The notes under the pieces were generated by a model, which had not been told where the DNA came from, made no database searches, and worked only from the letters and a program-made list of their open reading frames with translations. From positions 62,001-126,000 of the IMG/VR virus record IMGVR_UViG_3300023174_000039: a stretch of 64,000 nucleotides of DNA; one strand, given 5' to 3'. Every line of letters begins with the position of its first letter. Positions within the stretch are counted from its first letter, which is position 1. Both the position numbers and the translations under genes were made by a program. Of this stretch, positions 16,644 through 62,410 are shown piece by piece.

Positions 16644-17168
16644 ATGACACAGAACAAAATACCCAGTGTAACATTTGCGTTTCGTGAGGGCGACGAAGAA
16701 CCCAAAGGCGGTGGCTGCCCAATTGGCGGAGCATTTGTTTTTAAAACAACCGATGAGTTGTTTGCCAAAAAGAAAGTGATACTGTTTAGCTTGCCCGGTG
16801 CATTCACACCCACTTGCTCAACATATCAGTTGCCCGGGTTTGAAAAACAATACAAGAACTTCCAGGCTCGCGGCATTGATGAGATCTACTGCATCAGCGT
16901 CAACGACGGGTTTGTTATGAATGAATGGGCACGTTCGCTAAAAATCAAGAATGTCAAGGTCATTCCTGATGGTGCTGGCTTGTTTACAGACGCCATGGGC
17001 ATGTTGGTTGACATGAGTGCCATTGGATTTGCCTGGCGCAGTCGCCGATATGCAGCCGTGATCAACGACGGTGTAATTGAGCACATGTTTTTAGAACCTG
17101 ATTCAAGCGAAACAGATCCTGATCCATATGGTGTTTCCAGTCCTGAAAATTTGATGAAGCACCTTTAA
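16644..17168 (+). CDS. peroxiredoxin (Prx5/redoxin family)
   Basis: LPGAFTPTCS, SVND.FVM..W, RSRRYA. Confidence 0.93.
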   Translation: MTQNKIPSVTFAFREGDEEPKGGGCPIGGAFVFKTTDELFAKKKVILFSLPGAFTPTCSTYQLPGFEKQYKNFQARGIDEIYCISVNDGFVMNEWARSLKIKNVKVIPDGAGLFTDAMGMLVDMSAIGFAWRSRRYAAVINDGVIEHMFLEPDSSETDPDPYGVSSPENLMKHL

Positions 17169-20467: not shown

Positions 20468-22003
20468 ATGATATTTGGTTTCGGCATATTAGCCACAGCT
20501 CTGCTACTGAGCCTGGTGGCCGCTTATTACTCAGTAGCAGGCCTTACCGCCATATTTTCTGCGGCAGTTGTTCCTGTTGTTATCATGGGTGGCAGCTTGG
20601 AACTTGGCAAGATTGTGGCCACAGTATGGTTGCATAACAATTGGAAACGAGCCGGCTGGGCATTCAAAGCATATTTGATTCCGGCAGTGGCATTCCTTAT
20701 GATATTGACATCAATGGGCATCTTTGGATACTTGTCAAAAGCTCATAGTGATCAAAGTCTAGTGTCCGGTGACTCTATGAGCAAGGTCGCTATCTATGAT
20801 GAAAAAATTAAGATTGCAAAGGAAAATATCGATGCGAACCGTAAGGCGCTTAAACAGATGGATGAAGCTGTTGACCAAGTCATGGGCCGAAGTACATCAG
20901 AAACGGGGGCAGATAAAGCCGTGGCTGTCCGTAGGGCTCAACAAAAGGAACGTGGGCGTCTCATTGCTGAAATCTCGGCCGAACAGAAAACAATTACTAG
21001 CCTTAGTGAAGAAAGAGCGCCGTTGGCGGCAGAATTCCGCAAGGTCGAAGCCGAGGTTGGTCCTATAAAATATATTGCGGCATTGGTATACGGAGATAAT
21101 CCCGATGCCAATGTGTTAGAAAAAGCAGTGCGTCTTGTGATCATCCTGATTGTGCTGGTGTTTGATCCCTTGGCTCTCACACTTATTCTGGCTGCCAACA
21201 AACAGTTTGAATGGGCGCGACAGGGCCGGGGCGGATTTGTGCATGATGAACCGGCATATCCTCCAGATGACGGCCCACTAACTGATGAACAGATTGAACA
21301 GATAAAACAAACAGCAGACAAACCCAGTTGGGCGACACATGCAGATCCGTCACCACCGGGTTGGATGTACAACACTACCACAACAACATACCCTTCTACT
21401 GAACAAGAAGTTGAAGAATTAACGTCCGAGTTTGATCGTAGCCGCCATGCATATCTGGACAAACCATTTGTGCATTTTGAAAATCTCAAACCAATGGTTG
21501 CCAAAACTGAATCAATCTTGTCACCGGTTGCCACAGAACCTATTAACCCAGCACCTGTGCCACAGCAGGTGATTGATTTTGATCCGTTTGATCCCGAAGA
21601 CACTCCAGAAATGAAAGCAGCCAAAGGACAATGGAAAGAATTAAATCCCAACGATACTTTAAAGAATCAACGTATCATGATGGCCAAGGGTATGATTGCT
21701 GAGTTGCCTTGGATAAAGTACTTGAAACCTGTGCCCAACTCCAGCTTTGGTCCTACGTTCCCAGCCACTCCCGAGCGTGGCGATAGCTTTGTCAAAACAG
21801 ATGTCATACCCAATCAACTGTATAAATTCAACGGCAATACCTGGATTTTAGTTGACAAATCCACAATAGATAACTATACTTACGACACAGCATACATTGA
21901 TCATTTGATTGATAAAATTGCCACTGGTGAATATGATCCTGATTTACTAAATCCAGGTGAACAAGAACAAGTAGCACAACGTTTACAAACCAAAACAAAA
22001 TAA
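20468..22003 (+). CDS. membrane protein with coiled coil and Pro/acidic C-terminus
   Basis: 3 N-terminal TMs, SMGIFGYLSKAH, EAEVGPIKYIA, VFDPLA; TAAATA upstream. Confidence 0.75.
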   Translation: MIFGFGILATALLLSLVAAYYSVAGLTAIFSAAVVPVVIMGGSLELGKIVATVWLHNNWKRAGWAFKAYLIPAVAFLMILTSMGIFGYLSKAHSDQSLVSGDSMSKVAIYDEKIKIAKENIDANRKALKQMDEAVDQVMGRSTSETGADKAVAVRRAQQKERGRLIAEISAEQKTITSLSEERAPLAAEFRKVEAEVGPIKYIAALVYGDNPDANVLEKAVRLVIILIVLVFDPLALTLILAANKQFEWARQGRGGFVHDEPAYPPDDGPLTDEQIEQIKQTADKPSWATHADPSPPGWMYNTTTTTYPSTEQEVEELTSEFDRSRHAYLDKPFVHFENLKPMVAKTESILSPVATEPINPAPVPQQVIDFDPFDPEDTPEMKAAKGQWKELNPNDTLKNQRIMMAKGMIAELPWIKYLKPVPNSSFGPTFPATPERGDSFVKTDVIPNQLYKFNGNTWILVDKSTIDNYTYDTAYIDHLIDKIATGEYDPDLLNPGEQEQVAQRLQTKTK

Positions 22004-22006
22004 CAC

Positions 22007-23197
22007 ATGAAATCAACTGAAAATATCAGCACCTGCAGTTTTTGCAACAAACACAAAGATGCAGTAACCAAACTTATTGTAGGTGAAGAAGTTGCAATTT
22101 GCAACGAATGCGTGGACTTGTGCCAAACATTATTGGTAGATCAACCTGAGGCAAAATCCGAAGAAGCTAGTCTTGACCCTAGAGAGATTAAAAATCATCT
22201 TGACCAATATGTAATTGGGCAGGACAATGCCAAGGTCATGCTGAGTGTGGCCATTGCCAACCACTACAAACGCATTAGAAACAAAGATGTCAACACTGAA
22301 ATTGAAAAAGCCAACATTCTCATGCTTGGCCCCACAGGTTCGGGCAAAACATTGTTGGCTCGCACAGTGGCACGTTACCTAGATGTACCATTTGTGATTG
22401 CCGATGCTACTAGTCTAACCGAAGCAGGTTATGTGGGCGATGATGTGGAAAGTTTGATCAGTCGCTTGTATGCTGCCGCTGGGGGAGATGTTGAAAAAAC
22501 ACAACGCGGTATTGTGTTTGTAGACGAAATTGATAAAATCAGCCGCAAAAGCGAAAGCACCAGTATCACACGAGATGTATCCGGTGAAGGCGTACAGCAA
22601 GCCTTGTTAAAACTAGTAGAAGGCACCAAGTGTCGCATCGTGCCACAAGGTGGCCGCAAACATCCAGGCGGCGACAACATAGAAATTGACACACGCAACA
22701 TTTTGTTCATTGCCGGTGGCGCATTTGTTGGGCTAGACAACATTGTTAAAAGTCGTGTTCAAGGCACAGGCATTGGGTTTGGTGCAGAAGTAAACAGCAA
22801 AACAGCCGGAGATCTACACATTGACAAAACCACTCCTGACGATCTTGTGAGATTTGGACTTATTCCTGAGTTTGTGGGAAGGTTTCCTGCTTGGGTCGCA
22901 CTACGAGAACTAGACAAAAAAGATCTTGTGAGAATCCTTAAAGATGTCAAACATAACTATGTGAGTCAATATCAATGGTTGTTCAAACAGGACAATGTTG
23001 AACTTGAATTTACATCTGACAGCTTGGAGTTGATTGCAGAACGCACACTCAAAAACAAAACAGGCGCACGTGGATTACACAGTGAACTAGAGCGTGTGCT
23101 AATGCCACACATGTACAACCTAACACGCTATCGTACCAGCGGCATTAGCCATGTGGACATTGATCAGAATTTGGTAAATATTCCCAAGGAGCTTTAA
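22007..23197 (+). CDS. clpX: ATP-dependent Clp protease ATP-binding subunit ClpX
   Basis: C4 zinc finger, [23 protein letters not shown] loop, TGARGL. Confidence 0.97.
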
Positions 23198-23429: not shown

Positions 23430-23698
23430 TGTACATAGAGTTTTGTATCCCCAGTGGCGGAGGCGGCATGCCAGCACAATATGTCAACTACTGGTTGAAA
23501 CAAAATTTAGAATCTTGGGCCAAACGCTACAACGTTGAATACCAAACCAAGCATATCAAATACACTGTACGAGTAACGTTTGATGATGACAAATTGTATG
23601 ATTTTTTTGCCATGACCTGGCACCCAAAAAGCCAACACATGCAATCTGCTCTTGAACAATATCGCCTAATTGAACCAATGAAACTTGACAGAAGTTGA
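23429..23698 (+). CDS. hypothetical protein (same paralog family)
   Basis: VTFDDDKLYDFFAMTW. Confidence 0.65.
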   Translation: MYIEFCIPSGGGGMPAQYVNYWLKQNLESWAKRYNVEYQTKHIKYTVRVTFDDDKLYDFFAMTWHPKSQHMQSALEQYRLIEPMKLDRS

Positions 23699-23715
23699 GA
23701 TTTCCTGTATAAATA
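23685..23715 (+). promoter_or_regulatory. dual promoter: sigma70 TTGACA-17-TATAAA overlapping T4-type late TATAAATA
   Basis: TTGACA 23685, TATAAATA 23708. Confidence 0.75.
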
Positions 23716-23782: not shown

Positions 23783-24241
23783 ATGACAAAAACTCTCACC
23801 CTTCGTTCTTTCGATATTCCCGCAATTCACAAATTTGGTATCGGGTTCGATAACATGTTTGATGAACTCATGCGTGTGAGTGCCCAACAAGGCAGCACCA
23901 ACTACCCACCTTATGATATTGTACAAGTCAACGATGACGAATACATGATCAGTGTGGCTGTGGCTGGATTTGGGTACGATGATCTCTCAGTGACCAAGGA
24001 TAAAAAGATTTTAGTTATCGAAGGCACACACAGTCGTGAAACTGTGGAAAATGAAGATTCAACTGCAAAATACCTGCACAAAGGAATCAGTGAGCGTAGT
24101 TTCCGTAGAGAATTTCAATTGGCGGATCATGTGGAAATTACCGGAGCACACCTTGAACTTGGTATCCTAAGTGTTCACTTAAAACGTGAAATACCTGAAG
24201 AAGCCAAGCCAAAGACCATTGCTATCACATACACTTCCTAA
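23783..24241 (+). CDS. small heat shock protein Hsp20 (IbpA-like)
   Basis: IGFD..FD, NYPPYDI, AVAGF, YLHKGISERSF.R.F.LAD. Confidence 0.96.
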   Translation: MTKTLTLRSFDIPAIHKFGIGFDNMFDELMRVSAQQGSTNYPPYDIVQVNDDEYMISVAVAGFGYDDLSVTKDKKILVIEGTHSRETVENEDSTAKYLHKGISERSFRREFQLADHVEITGAHLELGILSVHLKREIPEEAKPKTIAITYTS

Positions 24242-24296: not shown

Positions 24297-24605
24297 ATGT
24301 CACAATCAGAAACACGTACAAAAATTAAACCAAGTGAACAACTCAAAGAGCCACCAATGTACAAGGTCATCTATCTAAATGATAACCAAACCACAATGGA
24401 ATTTGTGATCGAAACCTTGATTGAATTTTTTAATTACAACACAGACACAGCGTTTACCATCACAGAAGACATTCACAATGCTGGATCAGCATGTGTTGCG
24501 GTGTTGCCATACGAGATTGCCGAACAAAAAGGTATTGAAGTAACCCTGGCAGCCAGAAATAATCAGTATCCTTTGCAGATCAAACTTGAGCCTGATCAGG
24601 CCTAA
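24297..24605 (+). CDS. clpS: ClpS N-degron adaptor
   Basis: PPMYKVIYLNDNQTTMEFV...IHNAG...YEIAEQK...YPL. Confidence 0.93.
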   Translation: MSQSETRTKIKPSEQLKEPPMYKVIYLNDNQTTMEFVIETLIEFFNYNTDTAFTITEDIHNAGSACVAVLPYEIAEQKGIEVTLAARNNQYPLQIKLEPDQA

Positions 24606-30811: not shown

Positions 30812-31840
30812 ATGAACACACGAATTGGCTTTTGTTGCAAGTGGCTTAATGATCCGTACGAATGTGGCGGCATGAAAGTTAACGCAGTGGACCGTGACCT
30901 AAACGGCAGATCAACTACCATGAGATGGCTTCGCGAACATGCGTCCGAAGCCGACCAGCGTCAATGGGACATCATGAATCACAATGCGTCAGCGGCTGTG
31001 AGAATGATTGAACGTGTGGCCACACTACCGCCTGAACGTAGAATGGTACGACTTGGCTCAGAAATGCTACAAGGCTACACCGAACCCAACTGGATTGCTT
31101 GGTGGCAACGTCAGGAAATACAAGATCACTGTGCAAAGATCTTTGCTCCAATTGGTGAAGCCGCACGTAAATATGGTGTGCGTTTGAGCTTTCATCCTGG
31201 CCAGTTTTGTGTGCTAGCAAGCGAAGCAGATGAAATTGTAGAACGTAGCATACTGGAATTTGAATATCACGTGGATATGGCACGTTGGATGGGTTATGGT
31301 AGCACATGGCATGACAACGGGTTCAAGATCAACGTACACTTGAGCGGTAAAGGTGGACCCGCTAAATTCTTGCGTACCTTGGGTAGACTCAGTCCCGAAG
31401 CAAGAAACTTAATTACCATCGAGAATGATGAGATGACAAATGGACTTGACACTACTTTGGCTGTGGCTCAGCATGTGGCTCTTGTATTGGACCTACACCA
31501 CCACTGGATTAACTCGGGGGAATACATCTCCGCGCAGGACAGTCGTGTCCAGCGGGTTATTGACTCTTGGCGCGGCGCTCGTCCTGCACTTCATTACAGT
31601 GTTAGTCGCGAGGACCTTTTGGTTGACCATGACCGAGGAACTAGACCCGATCTTGCTGAACTTCTTGCTAGAGGTTATAAGAAACAGAAACTTCGAGCAC
31701 ACAGCGACTTCTATTGGAATGACGCTGTGACCGACTGGGCATTGACTTTTGCTGATGCATTTGATATTCAATGCGAAGCCAAAGGCAAAAACCTTGCCAG
31801 TGAACAAGTTTATGAACAATATATTTCTCAGCACTCTTGA
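30812..31840 (+). CDS. uvsE: UV damage endonuclease UvsE/UvdE
   Basis: IGFCCK, RLSFHPGQF, INVH, IENDE, DLHHH, HYS, AHSD, EAK.KN. Confidence 0.93.
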   Translation: MNTRIGFCCKWLNDPYECGGMKVNAVDRDLNGRSTTMRWLREHASEADQRQWDIMNHNASAAVRMIERVATLPPERRMVRLGSEMLQGYTEPNWIAWWQRQEIQDHCAKIFAPIGEAARKYGVRLSFHPGQFCVLASEADEIVERSILEFEYHVDMARWMGYGSTWHDNGFKINVHLSGKGGPAKFLRTLGRLSPEARNLITIENDEMTNGLDTTLAVAQHVALVLDLHHHWINSGEYISAQDSRVQRVIDSWRGARPALHYSVSREDLLVDHDRGTRPDLAELLARGYKKQKLRAHSDFYWNDAVTDWALTFADAFDIQCEAKGKNLASEQVYEQYISQHS

Positions 31841-32099
31841 ATGGATACGTGATGATTTTAAGTCTCACCCAGTTCGCTTTGTTGTTGAGCTTGTTGCTTG
31901 GGCTACTAGTGTTGGTTGCAGTATTACTATGGCACTCACAGTCCCCAATCCACCGCTTCTTGCTATGTATCCTGTTTGGATCTCTGGCTGTGCCATGTAT
32001 GCTTGGGCTAGTTGGTCTAGGAAATCTTTTGGCATGCTGGCTAACTATCTACTGTTGACCACCATTGACAGTGTGGGCTTGGCACGAATGTTAACCTAG
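31812..32099 (+). CDS. small membrane protein
   Basis: Three TM-like segments; ATG at 31812. Confidence 0.7.
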   Translation: MNNIFLSTLEWIRDDFKSHPVRFVVELVAWATSVGCSITMALTVPNPPLLAMYPVWISGCAMYAWASWSRKSFGMLANYLLLTTIDSVGLARMLT

Positions 32100-32118
32100 C
32101 ATGCAATAAATAGGTGTA

Positions 32119-32760
32119 ATGAAAACCATTGCCCTATTTGTACACCAACCCAAATGCTCTGTACAAAGTGCTAACGGAATTATCGAAGCATTGAGCCCGC
32201 ACTATCGATTCAAAATCTTTACCCGCCACGAAGTTGAGCGGGATTTTTTTGACGATGTGGATGCTGTTTGTTTCCCCGGTGGCATAGGCGATGCCAGCAG
32301 TTTTGATTACTTGACGCGAGAGAATATCACCAAGATTCAAGCCTTTGTGAGCACAGGCGGAGCATATATTGGCATCTGCATGGGTGCGTATTGGGCCAGC
32401 AGCAACTACTTTGACATACTCAAGCATGTTGATGCCAAACAGTACATGCGCAGACCCGGTACAGACACACGCCGACCACATGCTAAAAACATTGACATAA
32501 CCTGGAACAATGATCCAATGAAGATGTTTTGGTATGATGGGTGTGCTCTGGTTGGCGATGAGTCAAAGTTTACAACTGTGGCCCGCTATACAGGAAACAA
32601 CGACCCAATGGCCATCATACAAAACCGCATAGGACTAATAGGGTGTCATCCTGAAAGCACACCGCATTGGTATGAATCTTACAGTTGGATGCGTAGTCGA
32701 TATCATGATGGTTACCATCACGCATTATTATTAAATTTTGTCAACAGTTTATTAGTGTAA
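32119..32760 (+). CDS. BPL_N / class I glutamine amidotransferase-like protein
   Basis: FPGG, YIGICMGAY, GCHPE catalytic triad. Confidence 0.85.
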   Translation: MKTIALFVHQPKCSVQSANGIIEALSPHYRFKIFTRHEVERDFFDDVDAVCFPGGIGDASSFDYLTRENITKIQAFVSTGGAYIGICMGAYWASSNYFDILKHVDAKQYMRRPGTDTRRPHAKNIDITWNNDPMKMFWYDGCALVGDESKFTTVARYTGNNDPMAIIQNRIGLIGCHPESTPHWYESYSWMRSRYHDGYHHALLLNFVNSLLV

Positions 32761-32789
32761 CAAAATTGTAATAGTCTTCGTCTTAAATA
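32755..32789 (+). promoter_or_regulatory. Pho-box-like direct repeat plus late TAAATA promoter
   Basis: TGTAAC(32756)/TGTAAT(32767) with 11-bp period; TAAATA at 32784. Confidence 0.7.
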
Positions 32790-32793
32790 CTTG

Positions 32794-33606
32794 ATGAAGA
32801 CATATCGCTCAATCTTTGTTAGTGATGTCCACCTTGGAACCAAAGATTGTCAAGCCGATCGTCTCAACAACTTTCTCAAACACAACTCCTGTGATACCTT
32901 ATACCTAGTAGGTGATATCATTGACGCCTGGCGCATACAACAAAACCGCTGGCGTTGGAAGCAGAGCCACACCAACGTTGTTCGTCGGGTGTTAGGTCAT
33001 GCCAAGCGTGGTACTAGAGTTGTTTATGTAGCAGGCAACCATGACGAGTTCCTGAGACCAATGATACCATATGGTTTCAGTTTTGGACTTGTAGAAATAC
33101 ACAATCAAATTGAACATATAGGTGCCGACGGCAAGCACTATCTAGTCACTCACGGCGACTTGTTTGATGGTATAACAAGACTGGCACCATGGATAGCATT
33201 CTTAGGAGACAAAGCGTATGACATCGTTCTTACTATCAACTCTAAGTACAATTGGTTACGTCATCGCATGGGTTTTGGGTACTTTAGCATTAGCCAGTTT
33301 CTTAAGCACCGAGTTAAAAAAGCTGTAGACTTTATGTTCAAGTTTGAAGAAAATCTAGCAAACTATTGCAAGAAGCGTGGGTACGATGGAGTAATCTGTG
33401 GACACATACATCATGCAGAAATAAAAGAAATCAACGGTGTTATGTATATGAACGACGGAGACTGGGTTGAATCGTGTACTGCCTTAGTAGAACACTGGGA
33501 CGGACATTGGGAAATAATTACCTGGACCAAGGAGACAGACAATGTGGGTATTGATACTACTGGCAGTTCACTTAAACGACTCAAAAGACGTGCCGGGCCG
33601 AATTGA
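32794..33606 (+). CDS. PlcP-like phospholipase C (LpxH-like metallophosphoesterase)
   Basis: SDVHLGT..CQA, VGDIID.W, GNHDEFLR, HGDLFD, GDKAY, CGHIH, NDGDWVESCTAL. Confidence 0.85.
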   Translation: MKTYRSIFVSDVHLGTKDCQADRLNNFLKHNSCDTLYLVGDIIDAWRIQQNRWRWKQSHTNVVRRVLGHAKRGTRVVYVAGNHDEFLRPMIPYGFSFGLVEIHNQIEHIGADGKHYLVTHGDLFDGITRLAPWIAFLGDKAYDIVLTINSKYNWLRHRMGFGYFSISQFLKHRVKKAVDFMFKFEENLANYCKKRGYDGVICGHIHHAEIKEINGVMYMNDGDWVESCTALVEHWDGHWEIITWTKETDNVGIDTTGSSLKRLKRRAGPN

Positions 33607-33708
33607 ATTGCTATTTCAGGATCGCGCCACATGTGAACAAAGTCTGCAGAGCATGACATATTGGTTGAAGTTTAACCAATTCAAAATTGAAGGAAGGTGT
33701 GTGAAAAA

Positions 33709-34419
33709 ATGAAACTCAGCGATAAAATTACTATTGTAGTACCTTGCAAGAATGAAGAAAACTATATTCATCATTTGTTGGATGCCTTGCGTGGCCAAGA
33801 CATTGGCAACACCAGAATCATCATAGCTGACTGTTCCACTGACGCAACTAGACAAGTGATACAAGATAATAGTGCAGGACTGAATGTTGAAATCATTGAT
33901 GGTGGTCCCGTGAGTATAGCCAAGAACCGCGGAGCAAGATTAGCAACCACTCCATACATCTTGTTTATTGATGCCGATGTACGCTTCTTTAAACCCACAG
34001 TTATTCAAGATGCTGTCAACGCCATTGAACAAAAGAACTTGGATTTAATAGGATTGAAAATTAAATGTTATGACCAAGATCCAAGAGCAAAGATAGGGTT
34101 TATTATTTTTAATACTATAAATCAAGCATTGAAATATTTCTCACCTTTTGCAGTTGGTGCATTCATGCTCACACGCAAAGATCGGTTTGAAGAATTTGGC
34201 GGTTTCCCTGAACAGCTTAGTACCTCTGAGGACTACTTCCTATCAAAGAAATACAATCCCAGAAAGTTTAAAATCATCCGACACCACCTTGGGCAAGACT
34301 CGCGCAGATTCAAGAAGATGGGATATTTAGGTATGGCCAAGTATTTGGTGAAAAATTTTGTCAATCGTAATAATCAAGCATATTGGCACAAATCAGATCA
34401 TAATCGTTACTGGATGTAA
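33709..34419 (+). CDS. glycosyltransferase family 2
   Basis: VVPCKNEE, D.STD, AKNRGA, FIDAD, GGF, ED, SRR. Confidence 0.9.
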   Translation: MKLSDKITIVVPCKNEENYIHHLLDALRGQDIGNTRIIIADCSTDATRQVIQDNSAGLNVEIIDGGPVSIAKNRGARLATTPYILFIDADVRFFKPTVIQDAVNAIEQKNLDLIGLKIKCYDQDPRAKIGFIIFNTINQALKYFSPFAVGAFMLTRKDRFEEFGGFPEQLSTSEDYFLSKKYNPRKFKIIRHHLGQDSRRFKKMGYLGMAKYLVKNFVNRNNQAYWHKSDHNRYWM

Positions 34420-34448
34420 CATTACTGTAACTATCAATCACGTAAATA
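34414..34448 (+). promoter_or_regulatory. Pho-box-like direct repeat plus late TAAATA promoter
   Basis: TGTAAC(34415)/TGTAAC(34426); TAAATA at 34443. Confidence 0.7.
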
Positions 34449-34495
34449 ACACTGTACCATGTCGGTACGCACTCATAACACCTTAAGGAGAACCC

Positions 34496-35443
34496 ATGAG
34501 ATTAGAAGACCTAGCCACAAGATTATCGGCTGTTGAAGCCAAGTTAGCTACCCTAACTGGAACCACAGTTAACACAGACAGTGCCACAAGCATTGAAGAA
34601 CTAGACACAAGACTATCCATTGTTGAAATTCAAATTGAGCAGTTAATTGCTGTAAAAACACAACAACACGTTGACGCTATTGTTGCCGCAGCCGCACAAG
34701 CAGTTGAAAGCATCCAGGACGCTGTTGCAGAAGTAGTTGCACTTTCTCCAAGTGCAGAAGTACCAGCAGCCGCTGACATTGTGGCTGACGTTGTTCAAAC
34801 TCAAGCAGAAGCACCGGCTGTAGAGCACTCAGAAGTTGCTGACATTGTTTCAGCCGCTGTTCAAGCAGTTGTTGCTGCCGAGCCAGAAGTTGTCATTGAT
34901 ACAGTGGCAATTACAGAAGCTATTATAGCCGCTGTTGCTGATGCACCTTTGCCAACCAAAGCAGGAAATTCCATAGCAAATCAAAATATCTGCGCACCTG
35001 GCAATGAGCGAGTATGGTTATACCAAGGCAACATGAGCTCTACTCAGTGGGAAGATACACTGTTGATCAAGAGTGGTTACACTTGGTTTGCTCCAGAAGC
35101 AGACGTGACTTCTGGTGTTGTTATTGATGGTGATAGCCATGATGGAATCTATCACATTACTGTGGCCGATGCTGGTGGTAATGTTGTCATTCCAACTTCT
35201 GGCAAAGTATATACTTTTGTTCCACCAGCATCTGCAACAGAACCAGCACCAGAAGTGGTGCAACAGGTTGTTGACGCAGTTGTTGAAATCATTGCTGCCG
35301 CAACAGGTGTTGACACAGTTGCTCCTGAAATTGTACAACAAGTTGCTGATGCAATTGCAACTCCAGCAGATCCAGCACTAGACGCTATTGAAGCACGTTT
35401 AAATGTTGCTGAAGCCAAAGTTGATACCTTATTGGGCAAGTGA
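34496..35443 (+). CDS. acidic Ala/Val-rich protein with terminal coiled-coil repeats
   Basis: RLSAVEAK / RLSIVE / RLNVAEAK; SD AAGGAG. Confidence 0.75.
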   Translation: MRLEDLATRLSAVEAKLATLTGTTVNTDSATSIEELDTRLSIVEIQIEQLIAVKTQQHVDAIVAAAAQAVESIQDAVAEVVALSPSAEVPAAADIVADVVQTQAEAPAVEHSEVADIVSAAVQAVVAAEPEVVIDTVAITEAIIAAVADAPLPTKAGNSIANQNICAPGNERVWLYQGNMSSTQWEDTLLIKSGYTWFAPEADVTSGVVIDGDSHDGIYHITVADAGGNVVIPTSGKVYTFVPPASATEPAPEVVQQVVDAVVEIIAAATGVDTVAPEIVQQVADAIATPADPALDAIEARLNVAEAKVDTLLGK

Positions 35444-35504
35444 TCAACAGTATTTTTAAACCGGGCACAAAATAGCGTGCCGCTGGATTTGCGTAACCAG
35501 CACT

Positions 35505-35525
35505 AGCACCTTCGGGTGCTTTTTT
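35505..35525 (+). terminator. intrinsic terminator
   Basis: AGCACC-TTCG-GGTGCT-TTTTT. Confidence 0.9.
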
Positions 35526-35582
35526 ATACTCACTAAATCTTTGTTCTAGTGCAATAAATATTAACATAATAATAACTATAAG

Positions 35583-36890
35583 GTGAGTAAGATGATAAAA
35601 AGAATTGCCCTAGGTCTGGCCAGCCTTGTGCTGGTAGCAGTTGCCACTGCACAAACTACCACTACGTCGGGTACAACTGGTGGAACAACCACAGGTACTA
35701 GTACGCTGATCAATCAAAATTCATCATTGACCGGCGGATACTCTTCAACCAGTCTAGTAGACACCAACAGCACCAGCAACAGCACCAGCTTGGTTAACTC
35801 AAACAGCAATACCACCAGCAACAGCAACAGTACCAGCAACAGCACAATCAACAGTACCAGCACAAACAACAACAATAACAACAGCACCAGTACCAGTGTA
35901 AACACCAACAACAATATTCAAAGCGGTACGGTGACCAACAACAACAACAATGTCAACAGCGGCACAATGACCTACAACAACAACAATGTGAACTCTGGTA
36001 CAATGACCTACAACAACAACAATGTCAATACTAGCACCAGTGTAAACACCAACAACAACAACAATGTCAACACTGGCACGATGACCTACAACAACAACAA
36101 TGTGAGCACAAGTAACAGCACCAGTGTAAACACCAACAACAATATCAACACTGGTGACATGACCTATAGAAACATCAACACAAGTACCAGCACAAGTACT
36201 GCCACCAACAACAACAACAATGTGAACACAGGCACGATGACCTACAACAACAACAATGTGAGTACCAGTGCTGCCACAGTTAACAATAACAATGTCAGCT
36301 CCAGCACTGCCACCAACAACAATGTCAACACTGGTGACATGACCAATAGAAACATCAGCACTTCATCTAGTACTGCCACAAACACCAATATCAATCAAAA
36401 TGCAAACGTAAACACCAACATTCAAGCAGGTGAGTTGACCAACAAGAACATCAACACCACTGAGATTACACAGCGAGTTATTCAACCACCTCCAACAGCA
36501 GTAGCACCAGCTATGTTGAGTGGCGGCAACGCTGACCTATGCTCAACTGGTAGTAGTGGCAGTATACAAACACAGGTATTTGGCATAAGTTCAGGTGGTA
36601 CCATGCGTGATATGAATTGCGAACGTCTAAAGCTATCCAAGACTCTGTACGACATGGGCATGAAGGTTGCCGCAGTTGCCACAATGTGTCAAGACCGTCG
36701 CGTGTTTGATGCCATGTTGGCTGCTGGAACACCTTGTCCATACGAAGGCAAAATTGGTGAGCAGGCCCGAGCACAATGGGATGCAAATCCAGACAAGATC
36801 CCAAAGATGCCAGAGGAAAAAATAGATGACACTTATAAGAAAATTGGTATTGGCGCTTTGCTTGGCGTTATTGTCAACAAGTTATTCTAA
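35583..36890 (+). CDS. secreted/membrane protein with long Asn/Thr/Ser repeat and conserved Cys-rich C-terminal domain
   Basis: Signal peptide; repeats; DMNCERLKLSK.LYDMGMKVAAV..MCQD..AGTPCP; C-terminal TM. Confidence 0.8.
   Translation: MSKMIKRIALGLASLVLVAVATAQTTTTSGTTGGTTTGTSTLINQNSSLTGGYSSTSLVDTNSTSNSTSLVNSNSNTTSNSNSTSNSTINSTSTNNNNNNSTSTSVNTNNNIQSGTVTNNNNNVNSGTMTYNNNNVNSGTMTYNNNNVNTSTSVNTNNNNNVNTGTMTYNNNNVSTSNSTSVNTNNNINTGDMTYRNINTSTSTSTATNNNNNVNTGTMTYNNNNVSTSAATVNNNNVSSSTATNNNVNTGDMTNRNISTSSSTATNTNINQNANVNTNIQAGELTNKNINTTEITQRVIQPPPTAVAPAMLSGGNADLCSTGSSGSIQTQVFGISSGGTMRDMNCERLKLSKTLYDMGMKVAAVATMCQDRRVFDAMLAAGTPCPYEGKIGEQARAQWDANPDKIPKMPEEKIDDTYKKIGIGALLGVIVNKLF
35760..36460 (+). repeat. 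coding AAC/ACC-rich repeat (GTMTYNNNNV units)
   Basis: ATGACCTACAACAACAACAATGT occurs four times, plus GDMT variants. Confidence 0.9.
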
Positions 36891-42158: not shown

Positions 42159-42761
42159 TTATTTTTTAAACAACAATGATGAAGCGATGACCAAGGCAGT
42201 CTGTGCAGCCTCTACGTCATCAGGCTGTTGTTTCCAACCCACGCTGATTTGTCCTATAAACACCCCGGGCTCGGCAGGCACACTGATACGGCACATGTAA
42301 TTCACACCGTTTTCTCTGTAGGCAAATCCAATTAGACTTTGTGGTTTGAGATAGGGACTGCACGGTATTTTACCAGACATGAGTCCAATCACATCATTGT
42401 TGTTGTCGTAGTTTTTGCTGAACAAGCCCACATCCAGGCCGTCGTACTGCTTGATTCTGCCACCATTGCGTGTGGACACAAACACAATTTTTCTTGTGTT
42501 TACCAGGGTATTGACCTCCATGATAGACACCAGTTCTACATCGGTGTTTTTCAACAAGAAATTGTAGGCTTCTTCATATCGGCCATTCATCTTGGGCAGG
42601 GCCTGTTGGGCACGATATGTGGCCATCATGGCATCTTTTTCGCTGTAAACAAACCAGCCCACAAAGCCCAGCACACACAGTAATATTACTGTGAATAATC
42701 TAAAAGGACTTTGCCCGATCCAGTTTAGTATTTCAAGCAGGGCTTCTTTGATCTTGTCCAT
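42159..42761 (-). CDS. single-TM protein with GAF-like periplasmic domain (T4 holin T-like?)
   Basis: N-terminal TM; C-terminal YMCRISVP....FIGQISVGW. Confidence 0.45.
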   Translation of the reverse strand: MDKIKEALLEILNWIGQSPFRLFTVILLCVLGFVGWFVYSEKDAMMATYRAQQALPKMNGRYEEAYNFLLKNTDVELVSIMEVNTLVNTRKIVFVSTRNGGRIKQYDGLDVGLFSKNYDNNNDVIGLMSGKIPCSPYLKPQSLIGFAYRENGVNYMCRISVPAEPGVFIGQISVGWKQQPDDVEAAQTALVIASSLLFKK

Positions 42762-44022
42762 GTGCCTGTTCTTTGTCACAAACAAATGCTGTCACTGCTA
42801 CGTTACCATGCACATGACTTGCTGTGCGAATCATGTCCATCAGAGGATCAACTGCAATCAACAGTACCAACACAGCTTCGCTGGGCAGTTTCAACAAGTC
42901 ACAAACAACTGCTACAGTGGCCACTGTGAGAATACCTGTTGTACCTGCTGATGCAAGCCCTGCCAAGATACTACCAAATAGCACAACTAGTAATCCTGTT
43001 AAGCCTAGTGGTGCATCATAAATGTTGGCAATGAATACTGTGGCAATGGCATAGTAAACGATACTACCAATGCGATTAACAGTGAAGCTGAGTGGCACAG
43101 TTAGTTCAACGCCGCCCTTGTCAAAGTGTAGTTTGTGCAGGGCTTCTTGTGCGTATGGGATACAGGCCAAACTTGAGCGTGAACTCACAGCAACAATCAG
43201 TGTTTCTTTGGTTTCTCGGATCACGGTAGCAAGGCTTAGACCTGAACGTGCCCAGATCACAGCAGTACCTGCCGCAACAACCAACACCCCCCCAACAAAC
43301 TGCTGGAACACAAAGTCAAACATGGTCATGAAGATGCCCACACCAACCTTGCCAACCTGCGATGAAATCATGGCCAACAGCGCAATTGGCAAGAAATAGT
43401 TTAGGAACTTGAAGATGCTGATACTGGCCTGTTGAATACTCTTTAGCACTTCCACCAACATCTTTTGACCTTCTGTTTTCAGGTGCCCCAGTGCCACACC
43501 AAAGATCAAACAAAAGATCACAATCTTTAAGCTCTCACCATTGTTTAGTGTGTTGAAGATGTTTTCAGGAATGAACTTTTCTGCCATCTTGCCTGCATTG
43601 ACAGGTGGTGCAACAGGCATGGGCTCGTGTAAAGTGATATTCAAATCAGTACCACTGTCTTTGTTGTTGACCAGCACACCCAGTTGTGTTTTCTTCTCTG
43701 GTGTCATTTCTGTACCTGTGACCAGCACAGTGCCCACACCAATCACAGCGGCCAGGAACATACTGCCCACAAAGCCAATGATGATTTTGCGTATCAATTC
43801 TTGACTGCCTTCTTTCTGCAGTAGGCCAATGATACCCACCAGGATAGTGGCCAACAAGAATGGTAACACAACAACTTTGAGCAGGCTGATGTAGATGCTG
43901 CCAATGCTGTCAAGACCTGTGCTGAACTCTGGAGCATACACACCAGCTAGAATGCCCACAATGATTGAACCAAGTATGGTCCAGGGGCTGATCAAAAATG
44001 TTTTTAAATGTGCAGTTGTCAT
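42733..44022 (-). CDS. dicarboxylate/amino acid:cation symporter (DAACS, GltP family)
   Basis: Multi-TM; IPENIF, SSRSS hairpin, D...DM.RT in TM8. Confidence 0.92.
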   Translation of the reverse strand: MTTAHLKTFLISPWTILGSIIVGILAGVYAPEFSTGLDSIGSIYISLLKVVVLPFLLATILVGIIGLLQKEGSQELIRKIIIGFVGSMFLAAVIGVGTVLVTGTEMTPEKKTQLGVLVNNKDSGTDLNITLHEPMPVAPPVNAGKMAEKFIPENIFNTLNNGESLKIVIFCLIFGVALGHLKTEGQKMLVEVLKSIQQASISIFKFLNYFLPIALLAMISSQVGKVGVGIFMTMFDFVFQQFVGGVLVVAAGTAVIWARSGLSLATVIRETKETLIVAVSSRSSLACIPYAQEALHKLHFDKGGVELTVPLSFTVNRIGSIVYYAIATVFIANIYDAPLGLTGLLVVLFGSILAGLASAGTTGILTVATVAVVCDLLKLPSEAVLVLLIAVDPLMDMIRTASHVHGNVAVTAFVCDKEQAHGQDQRSPA

Positions 44023-44031
44023 GGGGTGTCC

Positions 44032-44850
44032 TTATTTCTTTTCAGCTTTGTAGCGATCCATCAACTTCTTGGTGTCGATGTTGTTGTATTCATTTTTAAT
44101 CACGTAGTTGACCACGCTCAACAGTTGAATAGCCCGGGGATTCACTGCCACAGCAATGTTGTCTACACTGTCAGAGATGGTGATTGACTTGGTAGTAATT
44201 GCCGCATCTGGCTTTTCAAATGCAATTTTCTTGATTTCAAATTCATCACGGTAAGCGGCAGCGATGTCGCCACGTGTGACTTTGTCAATGATCACATCCC
44301 ACTTGTCTTCAGGCAGGAATTGTGCATTGGGAAAGTTAATTCTAGCAAATGTGTCATAACTGGAGTTGCGGATAAAACTTATCTTGCCGTTGAATTCTCT
44401 AATCACTTGATACACTTCTCTGCCCTGAGTATTCTGGCTCAACCATAGTCGATTCACAACTAAACTTTGGCGCAGTTTGATATAGGGATCACTGAATCTA
44501 ACTACTTGTAACCGTGGACCAGTTACGGATAGTTTACTAACAGCAATATCTGCTCTGCCATCTCTGACCTGTTCTACAACTTCTGCGAAGCTTTCTGCGT
44601 CTCGTCTAAACTGTACAGGAACTCCAAGTAACACCCCAATGCGTCGAGCGATCTCAACGTCAAGGCCGTGTATGGTATCCTCGTCTCCGGAAAAGAATGG
44701 AGGATTGTCTTTTTTGGTCATTGCCACCACAAGCACATTGGCTTTTTTGATTGCGGCAATATCTGCGGGTAGTGGTACAGTTGATGTTGGTAACTGTGCA
44801 GAAGCAACAGTGGCCAACACAAGTAATACGGTGGCGAATAGTTTTTTCAT
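44032..44850 (-). CDS. periplasmic amino-acid substrate-binding protein (SBP family 3)
   Basis: Signal peptide; NPPF, GLDVEIA, ADIAVS.LS.T..R...V.FSDPY. Confidence 0.92.
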   Translation of the reverse strand: MKKLFATVLLVLATVASAQLPTSTVPLPADIAAIKKANVLVVAMTKKDNPPFFSGDEDTIHGLDVEIARRIGVLLGVPVQFRRDAESFAEVVEQVRDGRADIAVSKLSVTGPRLQVVRFSDPYIKLRQSLVVNRLWLSQNTQGREVYQVIREFNGKISFIRNSSYDTFARINFPNAQFLPEDKWDVIIDKVTRGDIAAAYRDEFEIKKIAFEKPDAAITTKSITISDSVDNIAVAVNPRAIQLLSVVNYVIKNEYNNIDTKKLMDRYKAEKK

Positions 44851-44911: not shown

Positions 44912-44940
44912 AAAAAAAAGTCCCTTGCGGGACTCTTTTT
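44912..44940. terminator. bidirectional-type terminator hairpin
   Basis: A-tract, AGTCCC-TTGC-GGGACT, T-tract. Confidence 0.8.
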
Positions 44941-45208
44941 ATTTTGCCGCTGGCTTGGGTGCTTTTGGCTTGGGTTCTGCTTTGGGTTTTGCAGGTGCCC
45001 GGGGTTTTGGTGTTGCCTTGGGTTTTGCAGGTGCTTTGGGGACAGGAGCGGCAATTGTTGCCTCAGTCCCTGCTGGCACAACTTCAACCTTGGTTTCAAC
45101 CACGGGTGCTGATTCAACCTTGGTTTCAGGTGCTGGTGCTTCGACTTTGTATGGTGCTTCGGGAATTGAAGGCTTGCCAAACAAGAATTCTTTGATTTTT
45201 GCTAACAT
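44939..45208 (-). CDS. Pro/Ala/Lys-rich small protein
   Basis: SD AGGAG and TAAATA upstream; KAPAKPK repeats. Confidence 0.7.
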   Translation of the reverse strand: MLAKIKEFLFGKPSIPEAPYKVEAPAPETKVESAPVVETKVEVVPAGTEATIAAPVPKAPAKPKATPKPRAPAKPKAEPKPKAPKPAAK

Positions 45209-45266
45209 AATGTTCTCCTATACAATTATTTATTAGTGATTGTTCACTAGAAAAAATTAAGATAAT

Positions 45267-45297
45267 TGTTGCAGTGCAAGGTAAATAATGTTACAAT
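45267..45297 (+). promoter_or_regulatory. PhaR-like box overlapping sigma70 and late promoters
   Basis: TGTTGCAGTGCAA; TTGCAG-17-TACAAT; TAAATA at 45282. Confidence 0.6.
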
Positions 45298-48036: not shown

Positions 48037-48081
48037 GTAATTATCTAAGCAGTTTATTGTTTAGATAATCATTTGTACATT

Positions 48082-48654
48082 ATGGCACTAGATACTACCA
48101 CAACCGAAAACTCTCACAGTCAAGACCTAGCCGATAACGGCATGTATGTTTTCATGGGCGAAGTAGACAATGAAAGCATCCGACCCATTATTGAATGGAT
48201 CTTGCACGAAAACTTTGTTGTAAAGAAAAAGCGCAAAGAACTCCTGCTGATGATCTGTAGTGAGGGTGGCGATATGAGTGCCGCCTTTGCCTTAATAGAT
48301 GTGATGAAGAGTTCCAACATCTTTATTAAAACCGTGGGCCTGGGGCAAATTGCATCAGCAGGCCTGTTGATCTTTCTAGCAGGATCACCGGGACGCAGAA
48401 CACTCACACCTAATACTTCAATCATGAGTCATCAATATGCCTGGGGCAGTGACGGAAAACATCATGAGTTGTTGGCTACCATTAGAGAATTTGAACTCAC
48501 GCAACGTCGCATGGTTCAGCATTACATAACCTGTACAGGATTGAGTGAAGAAGATATCAAGCAACACCTGTTGCCACCACATGATGTTTACTTGAGTGCC
48601 GAAGATGCCCTGAGACTAGGCATCTGTGATCATATCAGCCAGCTGGCTCGTTAA
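48082..48654 (+). CDS. ClpP-like protease (divergent)
   Basis: ICSEGG, GQIASAG (Ser), MSHQ (His), HDVYLSAE.A..LGICD. Confidence 0.88.
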   Translation: MALDTTTTENSHSQDLADNGMYVFMGEVDNESIRPIIEWILHENFVVKKKRKELLLMICSEGGDMSAAFALIDVMKSSNIFIKTVGLGQIASAGLLIFLAGSPGRRTLTPNTSIMSHQYAWGSDGKHHELLATIREFELTQRRMVQHYITCTGLSEEDIKQHLLPPHDVYLSAEDALRLGICDHISQLAR

Positions 48655-50319: not shown

Positions 50320-50943
50320 ATGCCCAGTTTGATCCCAATGGTTGTAGAACAAACCTCAAAAGGCGAGCGCAGTTACGACATTTACAGTCGGCTGCTTCGA
50401 GACCGTGTCATCATGTTGGACACCGAAGTAAGCGAACACATAGCCAGTTTGATTGTGAGTCAATTGTTGTACCTTGAAAGTGAAGACCCTGACAAGGATA
50501 TTTCGCTATATATAAACAGTCCCGGCGGTAGTGTCACTGCTGGACTTGCAATCTACGATACCATGCAGTTTATCAAACCAGACGTTCATACCATTGTTAT
50601 AGGACAAGCTGCCAGCATGGGCAGTTTCTTGGCACAAGCAGGTGCACCGGGCAAGCGTTTTGTGCTGCCTGAAAGTCGCACCATGATTCACCGTGTGAGT
50701 TCAGGTACTCCCAGCACACGTGGCTCAATCCATGTGCAGGAACTGGAGTTTGAAGATGCTCGCAGAATGTTTGAAGAATCAAAACGCATCAACCAACGTC
50801 TTACTGAATTGTATGTCAAACACAACACAGCAGGCAAAACCTATGAAGAACTGTACGAGGCCATGAAGTTTGACACCTTCTTGAGCGCCGAGCAAGCAGT
50901 GGCATATGGACTTGCTGACAAAATTGTAACCAAACGAGTCTAA
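50320..50943 (+). CDS. clpP: ATP-dependent Clp protease proteolytic subunit
   Basis: [42 protein letters not shown]. Confidence 0.97.
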
Positions 50944-52106
50944 TGTTTTTTTCAATCACACACCACCCTGACACAAATTTTTCACATCAATGGCACAGCC
51001 CATCTCTAGTTGTCAACACTGACGCAGGATGGAATCATGTTGTGATTGATGATCAAATGGTGGTGTACAAAGGTTATGCTGAATCGGGTGTGTTGATTGA
51101 TCTGTTGCCACAAATACTGCAACAGTCTGAGCCAATGATGTTGGGCAATTTTTGTGCAATTGTGATTGGTAAAGATACATTAAAAATCAAAACAGACAGG
51201 TATCGTAGTTTTCCAATCTGGGTCAATGCCGGCAAAGAAATTACCAATTTGCAGGCATTGTCTCACACTGTGTGGACTGACATATACATTGAGTCAGATT
51301 TGGATCTAAACATTGTTCAGCACAAGTTCAATGTGATTGGCAAAATTGACACCACCCCAATTTCTGAATCAGATGCCTTGGAGCAGATAGATCAAATATT
51401 GCTGACTCGCACTGCTGACTTTGTCAAGTACAACACTCTGCCCATACGTTCTTTTCTAACAGGCGGGGTTGATTCGTTGCTGGTGTACAGTTATCTTGTG
51501 AGAGTCGGTGCACCAGTTGAAGTAATAGATTACTTGCATATTGACTATGATCACTTTTGGAAATCAAACTCTCATTATCTAAAAAAGTTCTGGGGGTACA
51601 GTCAGATACATCACTGGAACGACCCCACAGTTCTTGCCAGCGGCGCACCTGGTGATGAGTTTATGTTGCGCAGTCCCACAACTGCGTCAATGTATTTGCA
51701 GTTTCACCAATTGAACATGACGGATCTGTTGGAGGCCAATCCCACCTGTTTGCATTACTCGTATTTTAATCAAGCCAAAAATCTTGATGCCATACGACGA
51801 CCTTATGCTGTGACACGTCCGCAACAAATGGCCTGGGATATATGCAACATCCTGGTGAATGATTGGCAGCACTGGCACATTGGCAATACTTTGACCTGGA
51901 CCTTGTTGCGTGACATTGAAGTACTAAAACTATTGCTTAGAGTACCGGTAGAATCTGCTGTTGGTCAGATTCTCAACAGTGATCTTTCAAACCAGCTGAC
52001 TGAACGTAATCTTCCAGGGTCAACTGTTTGGATCAGTGACCAAAAGAACACAGGTGCTATGCGGAAAAATCTAACACGCCCGCTAAAAATTCGCAATGAT
52101 CTTTGA
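50943..52106 (+). CDS. asparagine synthetase-like (Ntn + PP-loop) protein
   Basis: GNFCAI, D.YRSFP, FLTGGVDS, GAPGDE. Confidence 0.7.
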   Translation: MFFSITHHPDTNFSHQWHSPSLVVNTDAGWNHVVIDDQMVVYKGYAESGVLIDLLPQILQQSEPMMLGNFCAIVIGKDTLKIKTDRYRSFPIWVNAGKEITNLQALSHTVWTDIYIESDLDLNIVQHKFNVIGKIDTTPISESDALEQIDQILLTRTADFVKYNTLPIRSFLTGGVDSLLVYSYLVRVGAPVEVIDYLHIDYDHFWKSNSHYLKKFWGYSQIHHWNDPTVLASGAPGDEFMLRSPTTASMYLQFHQLNMTDLLEANPTCLHYSYFNQAKNLDAIRRPYAVTRPQQMAWDICNILVNDWQHWHIGNTLTWTLLRDIEVLKLLLRVPVESAVGQILNSDLSNQLTERNLPGSTVWISDQKNTGAMRKNLTRPLKIRNDL

Positions 52107-53685: not shown

Positions 53686-53715
53686 TATTTACCATTAGAG
53701 TCTGTTGCACTGCAA
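53686..53715 (-). promoter_or_regulatory. PhaR-like box plus late TAAATA promoter
   Basis: TTGCAGTGCAACA on the minus strand, 11 nt upstream of TAAATA. Confidence 0.6.
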
Positions 53716-62222: not shown

Positions 62223-62410
62223 GTCCGTTTGACGCAATTGGATACAAGTTTCAATTGATACAGGCAGGCTTGGTCATGGATGATGATTTTTCTTGGTCGT
62301 ATGTTCCATCCACCTGGGACAACTTCACCGGCGAAACACACGGCAAATATGTGGTGTTTCAATTTCGTGAAGCTAATCTAGCAACTTTTTATCAATTAAA
62401 ATGGACATGA
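62195..62410 (+). CDS. hypothetical protein (same paralog family)
   Basis: FQFREANLATFYQLKWT. Confidence 0.65.
   Translation: MHPITIRDVSPFDAIGYKFQLIQAGLVMDDDFSWSYVPSTWDNFTGETHGKYVVFQFREANLATFYQLKWT

Follow-up and report, generated by a model that had tools for sequence, protein, structure and literature searches.

Pho-box-like repeats at a fixed distance from TAAATA promoter elements in a freshwater jumbo phage

Two short control regions in a giant freshwater phage join a predicted binding site for the host phosphate-starvation regulator PhoB to a minimal TAAATA promoter signal of the phage, and we find the same arrangement in front of phosphate-scavenging genes in many related phages. The module is real and conserved, and the reading of its repeats as Pho boxes is strongly supported by comparative sequence analysis, whereas the idea that PhoB here acts together with a phage late sigma factor is plausible but unproven.

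Two composite sites in the window

The DNA analysed (the window) is a stretch of 64,000 nucleotides, positions 62,001 to 126,000 of IMG/VR record IMGVR_UViG_3300023174_000039, and is part of a 331,654 bp freshwater jumbo-phage contig (Ga0214921_10000021). A preliminary description of the sequence had pointed to two sites with a TGTAAY direct repeat of 11-bp period, in which the second half-site starts exactly 17 nt before a TAAATA element, and this observation is confirmed, being exact and far above chance. Site 1 has TGTAAC at 32756-32761, TGTAAT at 32767-32772 and TAAATA at 32784-32789, while site 2 has TGTAAC at 34415-34420, TGTAAC at 34426-34431 and TAAATA at 34443-34448, all on the plus strand. 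The linkers within the repeats (32756-32772 and 34415-34431) are AAAAT and ATTAC, respectively, and both sites thus read TGTAAY-N5-TGTAAY-N11-TAAATA. Exact TGTAAY-N5-TGTAAY occurs twice against 0.04 expected, and 0 of 100 shuffled sequences reach two matches. When the full composite was allowed up to 2 mismatches, the same two matches were recovered against 0.11 expected. In both sites the first half-site contains the TAA stop codon of the upstream gene (32758-32760 and 34417-34419), a detail absent from the preliminary description, and one could therefore ask whether the repeats are a by-product of stop codons and AT-rich gene ends. This explanation, like pure chance, is refuted by the shuffle expectation, by the retention of the module in relatives where the upstream gene differs or is replaced by a terminator, and by the specific gene set behind it.

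The further claim that neither site has a good sigma70 -10 also holds. A sigma70 consensus scan of 32000-35700 gave only 9-of-12 matches, 5 against 8.0 expected in shuffles, and none is placed to serve these genes. One such match overlapping site 1 (TTGTCA-N17-CAAAAT) was rejected, as it scores 9 of 12 and is not kept in relatives with other linker sequences. A third half-site-N11-TAAATA match, a single TGTAAC at 44912-44890 on the minus strand upstream of a solute-binding protein gene, is a plain TAAATA promoter rather than a conserved Pho site, because relatives keep the TAAATA there but not the half-site.

At site 1, where the repeat overlaps the end of a GATase-like gene, the ATG of the downstream gene (32794) lies only 4 nt after TAAATA, a second detail missing from the preliminary description. 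This gene (32794-33606, plus strand) encodes a plcP-like metallophosphoesterase that is probably translated from a leaderless mRNA. It is followed on the same strand by a small conserved ORF (33542-33712) and by a family 2 glycosyltransferase (33709-34419), the second large gene of the site 1 transcription unit, whose stop codon overlaps site 2. Behind site 2 we find a stem-loop at the predicted 5' end of the transcript (34454-34468, GUACC/GGUAC), where relatives have a different sequence at the same place. The only gene of the site 2 unit (34496-35443) has a strong SD and encodes an Ala/Val/Glu-rich protein, predicted to be helical with an inserted beta domain, and the unit is closed by an intrinsic-terminator-like hairpin with a T run at 35505-35520; all three features are on the plus strand. 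The site 2 protein had no Pfam, NCBIfam or PHROG hits, and its AlphaFold model (mean pLDDT 70.8) had no significant PDB match (best E = 0.05).

Conservation and the genes behind the sites

Scanning relatives for the composite had been named beforehand as a test of the coupling, and in 870 kb of relatives 63 of 79 exact double half-sites have TAAATA at exactly N11. Without conditioning on TAAATA, positions +28 to +33 are T/A/A/A/T/A in 81-91% of 54 unique contexts, while the spacer varies. The half-sites have the form YTGTMAY, and five relatives (loci L007, L009, L015, L061 and L079) carry TGTCAY, the canonical Pho-box form.

The repeats lie almost only in front of phosphate-stress genes. In the first set of loci we found plcP-like genes in 39, pstS in 15, and homologues of the site 2 protein, a family of unknown function, in 13. 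The pstS assignments score 392 and 403 bits against a curated cut-off of 339. An unbiased scan of the viral collection gave 88 sites, among them 37 plcP-like genes, 25 pstS, 7 site 2 homologues and a Na/Pi cotransporter. The site 1 phosphoesterase is LpxH-like but scores 45 bits against the LpxH cut-off of 134, and is better described as PlcP-type, an assignment inferred from this score and from gene context rather than from direct comparison with a reference PlcP. Its bacterial homologues at about 50% identity sit in phosphoesterase-GT4 operons (two checked, loci L093 and L127), and many of the 44 cellular loci carry 11-bp-period GTCAT/TTCAC repeats upstream. This matches the published plcP-agt operon of the Pho regulon (PMC4796936), in which a metallophosphoesterase is followed by a glycosyltransferase behind a Pho box. 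The phage differs in pairing the phosphoesterase with a GT2 enzyme (with a weaker GT21 hit) instead of the GT4-type Agt, and in having the small extra ORF between them; the role may be the same although the family differs.

The repeats could in principle be bound by another OmpR-family regulator, or by a phage-encoded protein. TGTAAY dominates over TGTCAY (143 AA-type against 26 CC-type sites), and the half-site type is uniform within a genome (98% against 69% expected), as would be expected if sites track one trans-acting factor. Other OmpR-family sites, such as those of CpxR and ArcA, are also short direct repeats. We nevertheless consider this very unlikely, since the genes behind the sites are almost all Pho-regulon functions, canonical TGTCAY boxes occur at the same position in sister phages, and no response-regulator or winged-helix gene appeared among the window ORFs scanned with Pfam or PHROGs.

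TAAATA elements and the search for a phage sigma factor

TAAATA is a promoter class of its own, separate from the sigma70 promoters of the same genomes. Across about 1.9 Mb of related DNA, the hexamers after TTGACA at N17 are TATAAT (118), TATACT (30) and TACAAT (24), whereas TAAATA is found 0 times at N16-18 in 1,580 contexts. About 270 further non-redundant TAAATA sites in promoter positions have no -35 and only a weak R-A extension upstream. TAAATA peaks 4-6 nt before an ATG, or 17-30 nt before it with an SD in between, and the former layout predicts widespread leaderless mRNAs in these phages. In the window, TAAATA precedes a tail-fibre-like gene (2568) and a gene with a weak virion-protein match (20456), but also many metabolic genes.

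The lack of a -35 fits a T4-type late promoter core. T4 late promoters (TATAAATA, with gp55, gp33 and the sliding clamp) share the TAAATA core and a start a few bases downstream, but they are not known to have a site-specific DNA-bound activator. The two bases before TAAATA are CT and CG at our two sites, not the TA of T4, and R-A on average at the other sites, which resembles the looser form with a free first base before ATAAATA that is reportedly used by distant T4-like phages. Several genes are shared with the cultured T4-like phage Mosig and with XacN1/SCTP-2-type jumbo phages, a group that is reported to encode gp55-type sigma and gp33 (PMC7824862, PMC6102473). Mosig has annotated gp55 and gp33, and its plcP-like gene has AATAAATA-N5-ATG next to a divergent pstS-like gene. 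A DNA-level search against cultured phages found no relative.

We found no gp55-like or gp33-like gene for this phage. T4 gp55, a five-sequence jumbo-phage sigma profile, Mosig gp55 and Mosig gp33 were searched against six-frame ORFs of the window, of 9 kb beyond its 3' end (L338) and of about 1.9 Mb of related loci, without relevant hits; the DNA examined covers only about 73 kb of the 331 kb contig. The single gp33-like hit (locus L254) is in a 28% GC phage whose composite match is probably due to chance. A scan of the viral collection with the sigma profile gave at least 80 loci, and none of these 80 lies on a known family contig or shares close genes with the family. A search of a large protein collection was dominated by thousands of short cyanophage-type gp55 proteins and did not single out this family. 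As for the ends of the window, one end protein is not on record, and the 9 kb of L338 contained no informative genes. The assignment of TAAATA to a phage sigma thus rests on promoter grammar and on kinship with T4-like phages. Nor could a host be inferred from homologues, as the 75-89% identical hits in metagenome-assembled genomes come from four unrelated phyla and are evidently mis-binned phage contigs.

A proposed composite promoter and its relation to known Pho control

The preliminary description inferred that the host regulator gates transcription by the phage late sigma, and our data support this only in part, namely for the Pho-box nature of the repeats, their fixed distance from TAAATA and the distinctness of the TAAATA class. 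The explanation we prefer, although with no better than even confidence, is that each site is a composite promoter, in which two half-sites form a Pho box for phosphorylated host PhoB and TAAATA, exactly 11 bp downstream, is the -10-like core of a -35-independent class that this phage family uses widely and that is most likely read by host core RNA polymerase carrying a gp55-like sigma. Transcription should then start 5-7 nt after TAAATA. Site 1 would give a leaderless mRNA for a plcP-like phospholipase and a glycosyltransferase, a pair that would replace phospholipids with phosphorus-free glycolipids, and site 2 a hairpin-capped, SD-bearing mRNA for the protein of unknown function. In this view, phage-borne phosphate-stress genes would be made only, or mainly, when the infected cell is phosphate-starved. 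What the sequence comparisons establish is the module with its fixed spacing and conservation, the set of genes behind it and the separation of TAAATA from sigma70 promoters; that PhoB binds the repeats, that a phage sigma reads TAAATA and that PhoB activates that form of the polymerase are inferences, as are the start sites, the response to phosphate and the enzymatic activities. The lack of a gp55-like or gp33-like gene in the DNA examined, the prevalence of TGTAAY over TGTCAY and the bases preceding TAAATA count against this model. PhoB is known to activate through sigma70 region 4, which gp55 lacks, and a PhoB/gp55 complex has no known precedent.

A simpler possibility is that these are ordinary PhoB-dependent sigma70 promoters, where PhoB replaces the -35 contact and TAAATA is merely a weak -10 hexamer. 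The geometry is indeed close to that of E. coli Pho promoters (pstS, phoA and phoE type), in which 7-bp direct repeats of 11-bp period with an AT-rich linker occupy the -35 region 10 bp before the -10; here the gap is 11 bp to TAAATA, or 10 bp to NTAAAT. E. coli phoE also carries a TGTAAT half-site, TAAATA keeps the critical A at the second position, and no phage sigma gene was found in the DNA examined. However, most copies use TGTAAY and the setting is a lytic jumbo phage, the hexamer downstream of the box is an invariant TAAATA and not a sigma70-type TAnnnT, none of the hexamers paired with TTGACA in these genomes ever follows the box, and the roughly 270 TAAATA sites with neither -35 nor box would be nearly inactive with sigma70, yet sit in promoter positions. 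We therefore regard this reading as unlikely. Equally unlikely, in our view, is a dual-use promoter, where the same TAAATA is used early by sigma70 with PhoB when phosphate is scarce, and later by a phage sigma regardless of PhoB, without a true complex of the two. This would explain both the fixed box-to-hexamer spacing, by PhoB/sigma70 geometry, and the constancy of TAAATA, by the phage sigma, with the two constraints overlapping on one hexamer, and overlapping promoters do occur in these genomes (TTGACA-N17-TATAAATA at 23680-23715, and TTGACA-N11-TAAATA-TATAAT units in relatives). On the other hand, the box would add little if late expression were constitutive, and sigma70 use of a hexamer ending in A is unsupported in these genomes.

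The architecture also resembles that of T4 middle promoters, where a MotA box at -30 plus a sigma70 -10, together with AsiA, replaces the -35 with an activator box about 11-13 bp upstream of a -10-like hexamer, but here the box is a tandem Pho-type repeat, the hexamer is not TAnnnT, and no MotA or AsiA homologue was seen. Control of phage phosphate genes by the host PhoBR system through Pho boxes is already known from cyanophages (P-SSM2 pstS/phoA; S-PM2d, PMC10976474). Those boxes are of the cyanobacterial PyTTAAPyPy(T/A) type and loosely placed, their bioinformatic prediction is reported to be unreliable (PMC10976474), and a fixed coupling to a late-promoter core has not been described, in line with the preliminary description. 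Here, the coupling is strict and recurs in more than a hundred loci, and the module, 18 specified bases with a fixed spacing, retrieves phosphate genes from a whole viral collection when used alone as a search pattern.

The module extends the inferred reach of Pho control to abundant freshwater jumbo phages, and brings in a new cargo, a plcP-like phospholipase plus a glycosyltransferase, which suggests phage-driven membrane lipid remodelling. It also pairs an activator site with a promoter core that these genomes keep strictly apart from sigma70 promoters, and if a phage sigma reads that core, this raises the question of how a response regulator that normally contacts sigma70 region 4 works with a sigma that lacks it. 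Tentatively, and less likely than not, PhoB bound at a fixed position would activate polymerase carrying a minimal, region-4-less sigma of the gp55 type. This would be the first site-specific DNA-bound activator of a T4-type late promoter, and would let a large family of freshwater jumbo phages make part of their late or middle programme conditional on the phosphate status of the host.

The two sites and the genes that follow them

The preliminary description placed a TGTAAY direct repeat at a fixed distance from TAAATA in two intergenic sites, and this observation proved exact. At site 1, TGTAAC at 32756 and TGTAAT at 32767 are followed by TAAATA at 32784, while at site 2, TGTAAC at 34415 and TGTAAC at 34426 are followed by TAAATA at 34443. 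In both cases the spacer between the second half-site and TAAATA is 11 nt. The exact repeat pattern occurs twice in the window against 0.04 expected from shuffled sequence, and a search for the full composite with up to two mismatches still finds only these two sites, against 0.11 expected; chance is thus a very unlikely explanation. The first half-site of each site contains the TAA stop codon of the upstream gene, and at site 1 the start codon of the next gene (32794) lies only 4 nt after TAAATA. The claim that neither site has a good sigma70 -10 also held, as a sigma70 consensus scan finds nothing better than 9 of 12 in the region, and fewer such matches than in shuffled sequence.

The window is positions 62001-126000 of a 331,654 bp viral contig from a freshwater metagenome, and it has no DNA-level relative among cultured phages. 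Site 1 precedes three ORFs, namely a metallophosphoesterase that resembles LpxH but scores far below its cut-off (45 bits against 134), a small ORF of about 56 aa (33542-33712) and a family 2 glycosyltransferase. The small ORF is conserved between the phosphoesterase and glycosyltransferase genes, and is also present in L089, one of four contigs (L086-L089) whose sequences are 75–89% identical to this phosphoesterase. These contigs are filed in MAGs named Haliscomenobacter, Polynucleobacter, Fischerella and Gammaproteobacteria, and are evidently phage contigs mis-binned into bacterial genomes. Bacterial homologues of the phosphoesterase, at about 50% identity, are in Acetobacteraceae. In the two loci that we checked (L093 and L127) a GT4 glycosyltransferase follows at once, and many of the bacterial loci carry GTCAT/TTCAC repeats with an 11-bp period upstream. 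This is the layout published for plcP-agt, which serves lipid remodelling during phosphate starvation under a Pho box (PMC4796936).

Site 2 precedes a single gene (34496-35443) for an Ala/Val/Glu-rich helical protein, and a terminator-like hairpin at 35505-35520 closes this unit. The protein gave no family hit, and its predicted structure (mean pLDDT 70.8) matches nothing significantly. In an alignment with its homologues, it has similar 'RL-V-EAKVD-LLGK' segments at both ends, and the copy in this phage has an inserted beta-rich domain of about 100 aa that is absent from most relatives. A stem-loop starts 4–6 nt after TAAATA in the site 2 leaders, at 34454-34468 in the window and at L079:7667-7683 and L019:7658-7676 in two related loci. 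The stem sequences differ between relatives (GUACC/GGUAC against GUGCCA/UGGCAC), which suggests a conserved 5' hairpin, although single-sequence folding energies are not significant.

Conservation of the repeat upstream of phosphate genes

Conservation of the repeat and of its spacing had been named beforehand as a point on which the idea could fail. We fetched 80 related viral loci with the phosphoesterase as probe. Most of these keep the module upstream of that gene, even where the upstream neighbour differs or is replaced by a terminator. In 870 kb of these relatives there are 79 exact TGT[AC]AY-N5-TGT[AC]AY matches, and 63 of them have TAAATA exactly 11 nt downstream. Base counts taken without conditioning on TAAATA show 81–91% T/A/A/A/T/A at the expected columns, while the 11-nt spacer is variable. 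Several relatives have TGTCAC/TGTCAT half-sites, the textbook proteobacterial form of the Pho box. The half-site type (A or C at the fourth base) is uniform within a genome, with 98% agreement between sites against 69% expected.

Next, we asked which genes carry the module. In the first set of loci the downstream genes fall into a few families, namely plcP-like (39 loci), pstS (15), homologues of the site 2 protein (13) and a small ORF (5). The pstS assignments pass the curated cut-off of NCBIfam (392 and 403 bits against 339). A scan of the viral collection for the composite pattern returned at least 119 loci, and the 88 sites that we analysed precede 37 plcP-like genes, 25 pstS genes, 7 homologues of the site 2 protein, a Na/Pi cotransporter, an unknown membrane protein family and a few singletons. 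The motif alone thus retrieves phosphate genes, and this is the strongest argument that the repeats are Pho boxes. We consider a different repeat-binding regulator improbable; no response-regulator or winged-helix gene was seen among the window ORFs that we scanned. The pstS product is of the E. coli type with a Gram-negative signal peptide, and strong Shine-Dalgarno (SD) sequences are common, which points to a proteobacterium as the host.

A third match in the window, at 44912-44890 upstream of a solute-binding protein gene, is different, in that relatives keep the TAAATA there but not the half-site. The gene belongs to a phage-borne uptake pair (42733-44850, minus strand), in which a family 3 solute-binding protein is followed by a GltP/DctA-type symporter, and the pair sits behind a bidirectional terminator (about 44915-44945) and two tandem TAAATA elements. 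Further host-like genes in the window (592-1539, 16644-17168, 30812-31840, 52057-53184 on the minus strand, 58379-58831, 59479-60330 and 62401-63219) encode two radical SAM proteins, a peroxiredoxin, a UvdE UV endonuclease, a cysteine dioxygenase, a second metallophosphoesterase and a D-Ala-D-Ala carboxypeptidase.

TAAATA and sigma70 promoters in these phages

TAAATA is over-represented between genes in the window, where 18 of 38 copies lie in 7% of the sequence. Across about 1.9 Mb of these phages, it peaks sharply 4–6 nt before the ATG of long ORFs without an SD, or 17–30 nt before it with an SD in between, as would fit a -10-like element with a start 5–7 nt downstream and frequent leaderless mRNAs. 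The arrangement without an SD is seen at 20456, 32107, 32784, 53189 (minus strand) and 59131 in the window, and at many genes in the related loci (L002-L085 and L219-L337). TATAAT shows the same peak at 5–6 nt, and leaderless mRNAs therefore seem common in this phage family. About 270 non-redundant TAAATA sites of this kind have no half-site and no -35 consensus, but only a weak R-A preference just upstream. At two separate promoters the palindrome TTGCAGTGCAA lies just upstream of TAAATA (about 45262-45272 and about 53705-53715, the latter on the minus strand), and may be an operator for a dimeric regulator.

The same genomes hold many canonical sigma70 promoters. After TTGACA at N17 the hexamers are TATAAT (118), TATACT (30) and TACAAT (24), whereas TAAATA occurs 0 times at N16-18 among 1,580 contexts. 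Conversely, no TAnnnT hexamer follows the Pho box. Two promoter grammars therefore coexist and do not mix. An ordinary PhoB/sigma70 promoter would be expected to use the sigma70 grammar, and these do not, so that a plain PhoB/sigma70 promoter with an odd -10 is weakened as an explanation and appears unlikely. It is likewise possible, but doubtful, that one hexamer serves two purposes, being read by sigma70 plus PhoB early and by a phage sigma late. The two kinds of element can lie close together. The Hsp20 gene has TTGACA-N17-TATAAATA, a sigma70 promoter overlapping a perfect T4 late consensus; this gene is part of a protein-quality-control set (22007-23197, 23783-24241, 24297-24605, 48073-48654 and 50320-50943) of ClpX, Hsp20, a small protease-adaptor-like protein and two ClpP paralogues. 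In four related loci (L021:4293, L028:5538, L037:4398 and L043:1534) there is a conserved unit, TTGACA-N11-TAAATA-TATAAT, which is a sigma70 promoter with an embedded TAAATA. It is followed by a conserved, non-coding-looking stretch whose product may be a small RNA.

An inferred link to T4-type late transcription

The connection of TAAATA to a T4-type late sigma is inferred. The 20468-22003 protein and the phosphoesterase have their best cultured-phage matches in Pelagibacter phage Mosig and in XacN1/SCTP-2-type jumbo phages, and a further set of Mosig proteins has homologues in the family loci. Published comparative work states that this 'group 2' of jumbo phages lacks its own polymerase but encodes gp55-type sigma and gp33 (PMC7824862; PMC6102473), and Mosig has annotated gp55 and gp33. 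In this cultured T4-like phage the plcP-like gene lies divergent from a pstS-like gene (L339:2351-2500, the Mosig sequence), and each is faced by a TAAATA element. The plcP-like gene carries AATAAATA followed by 5 nt and the ATG, while the pstS-like side has TAAATA, a hairpin and an SD. Repeats with an 11-bp period lie between the two genes, but they are of a different sequence (TTAAC type) and at a different spacing from the TAAATA elements, making this an analogous layout. Mosig also uses TAAATA-N5-ATG before a virion-associated gene. Nevertheless, we found no gp55-like or gp33-like gene in the window, in the 9 kb (L338) beyond its 3' end, or in any related locus, a search that left about three quarters of the contig unread, and collection-wide searches were saturated by other T4-like phages.

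The interpretation offered in the preliminary description, that the host phosphate-starvation regulator gates transcription by a phage late sigma, is thus only partly supported. The conserved module, its spacing, the genes behind it and the separation of the two promoter grammars come directly from sequence comparison, whereas binding by PhoB, recognition of TAAATA by a phage sigma, activation of that form of polymerase and the response to phosphate are inferred. The main mechanistic objection to the hybrid is that PhoB is known to act through sigma70 region 4, which gp55 lacks, and we regard the full hybrid model as about as likely as not. Pho boxes in phages and host PhoBR control of phage pstS have been described (PMC10976474), but our literature searches found no description of a strict coupling to a T4-type promoter core, nor of plcP-like genes as phage cargo. 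The finding is of real interest for phage transcription and for freshwater phosphorus ecology. The best-supported reading is a composite promoter in which host PhoB~P, bound at a fixed position, would switch on initiation from the -35-independent TAAATA core of the phage, and phage-borne phosphate-stress genes would then respond to the phosphate status of the host.
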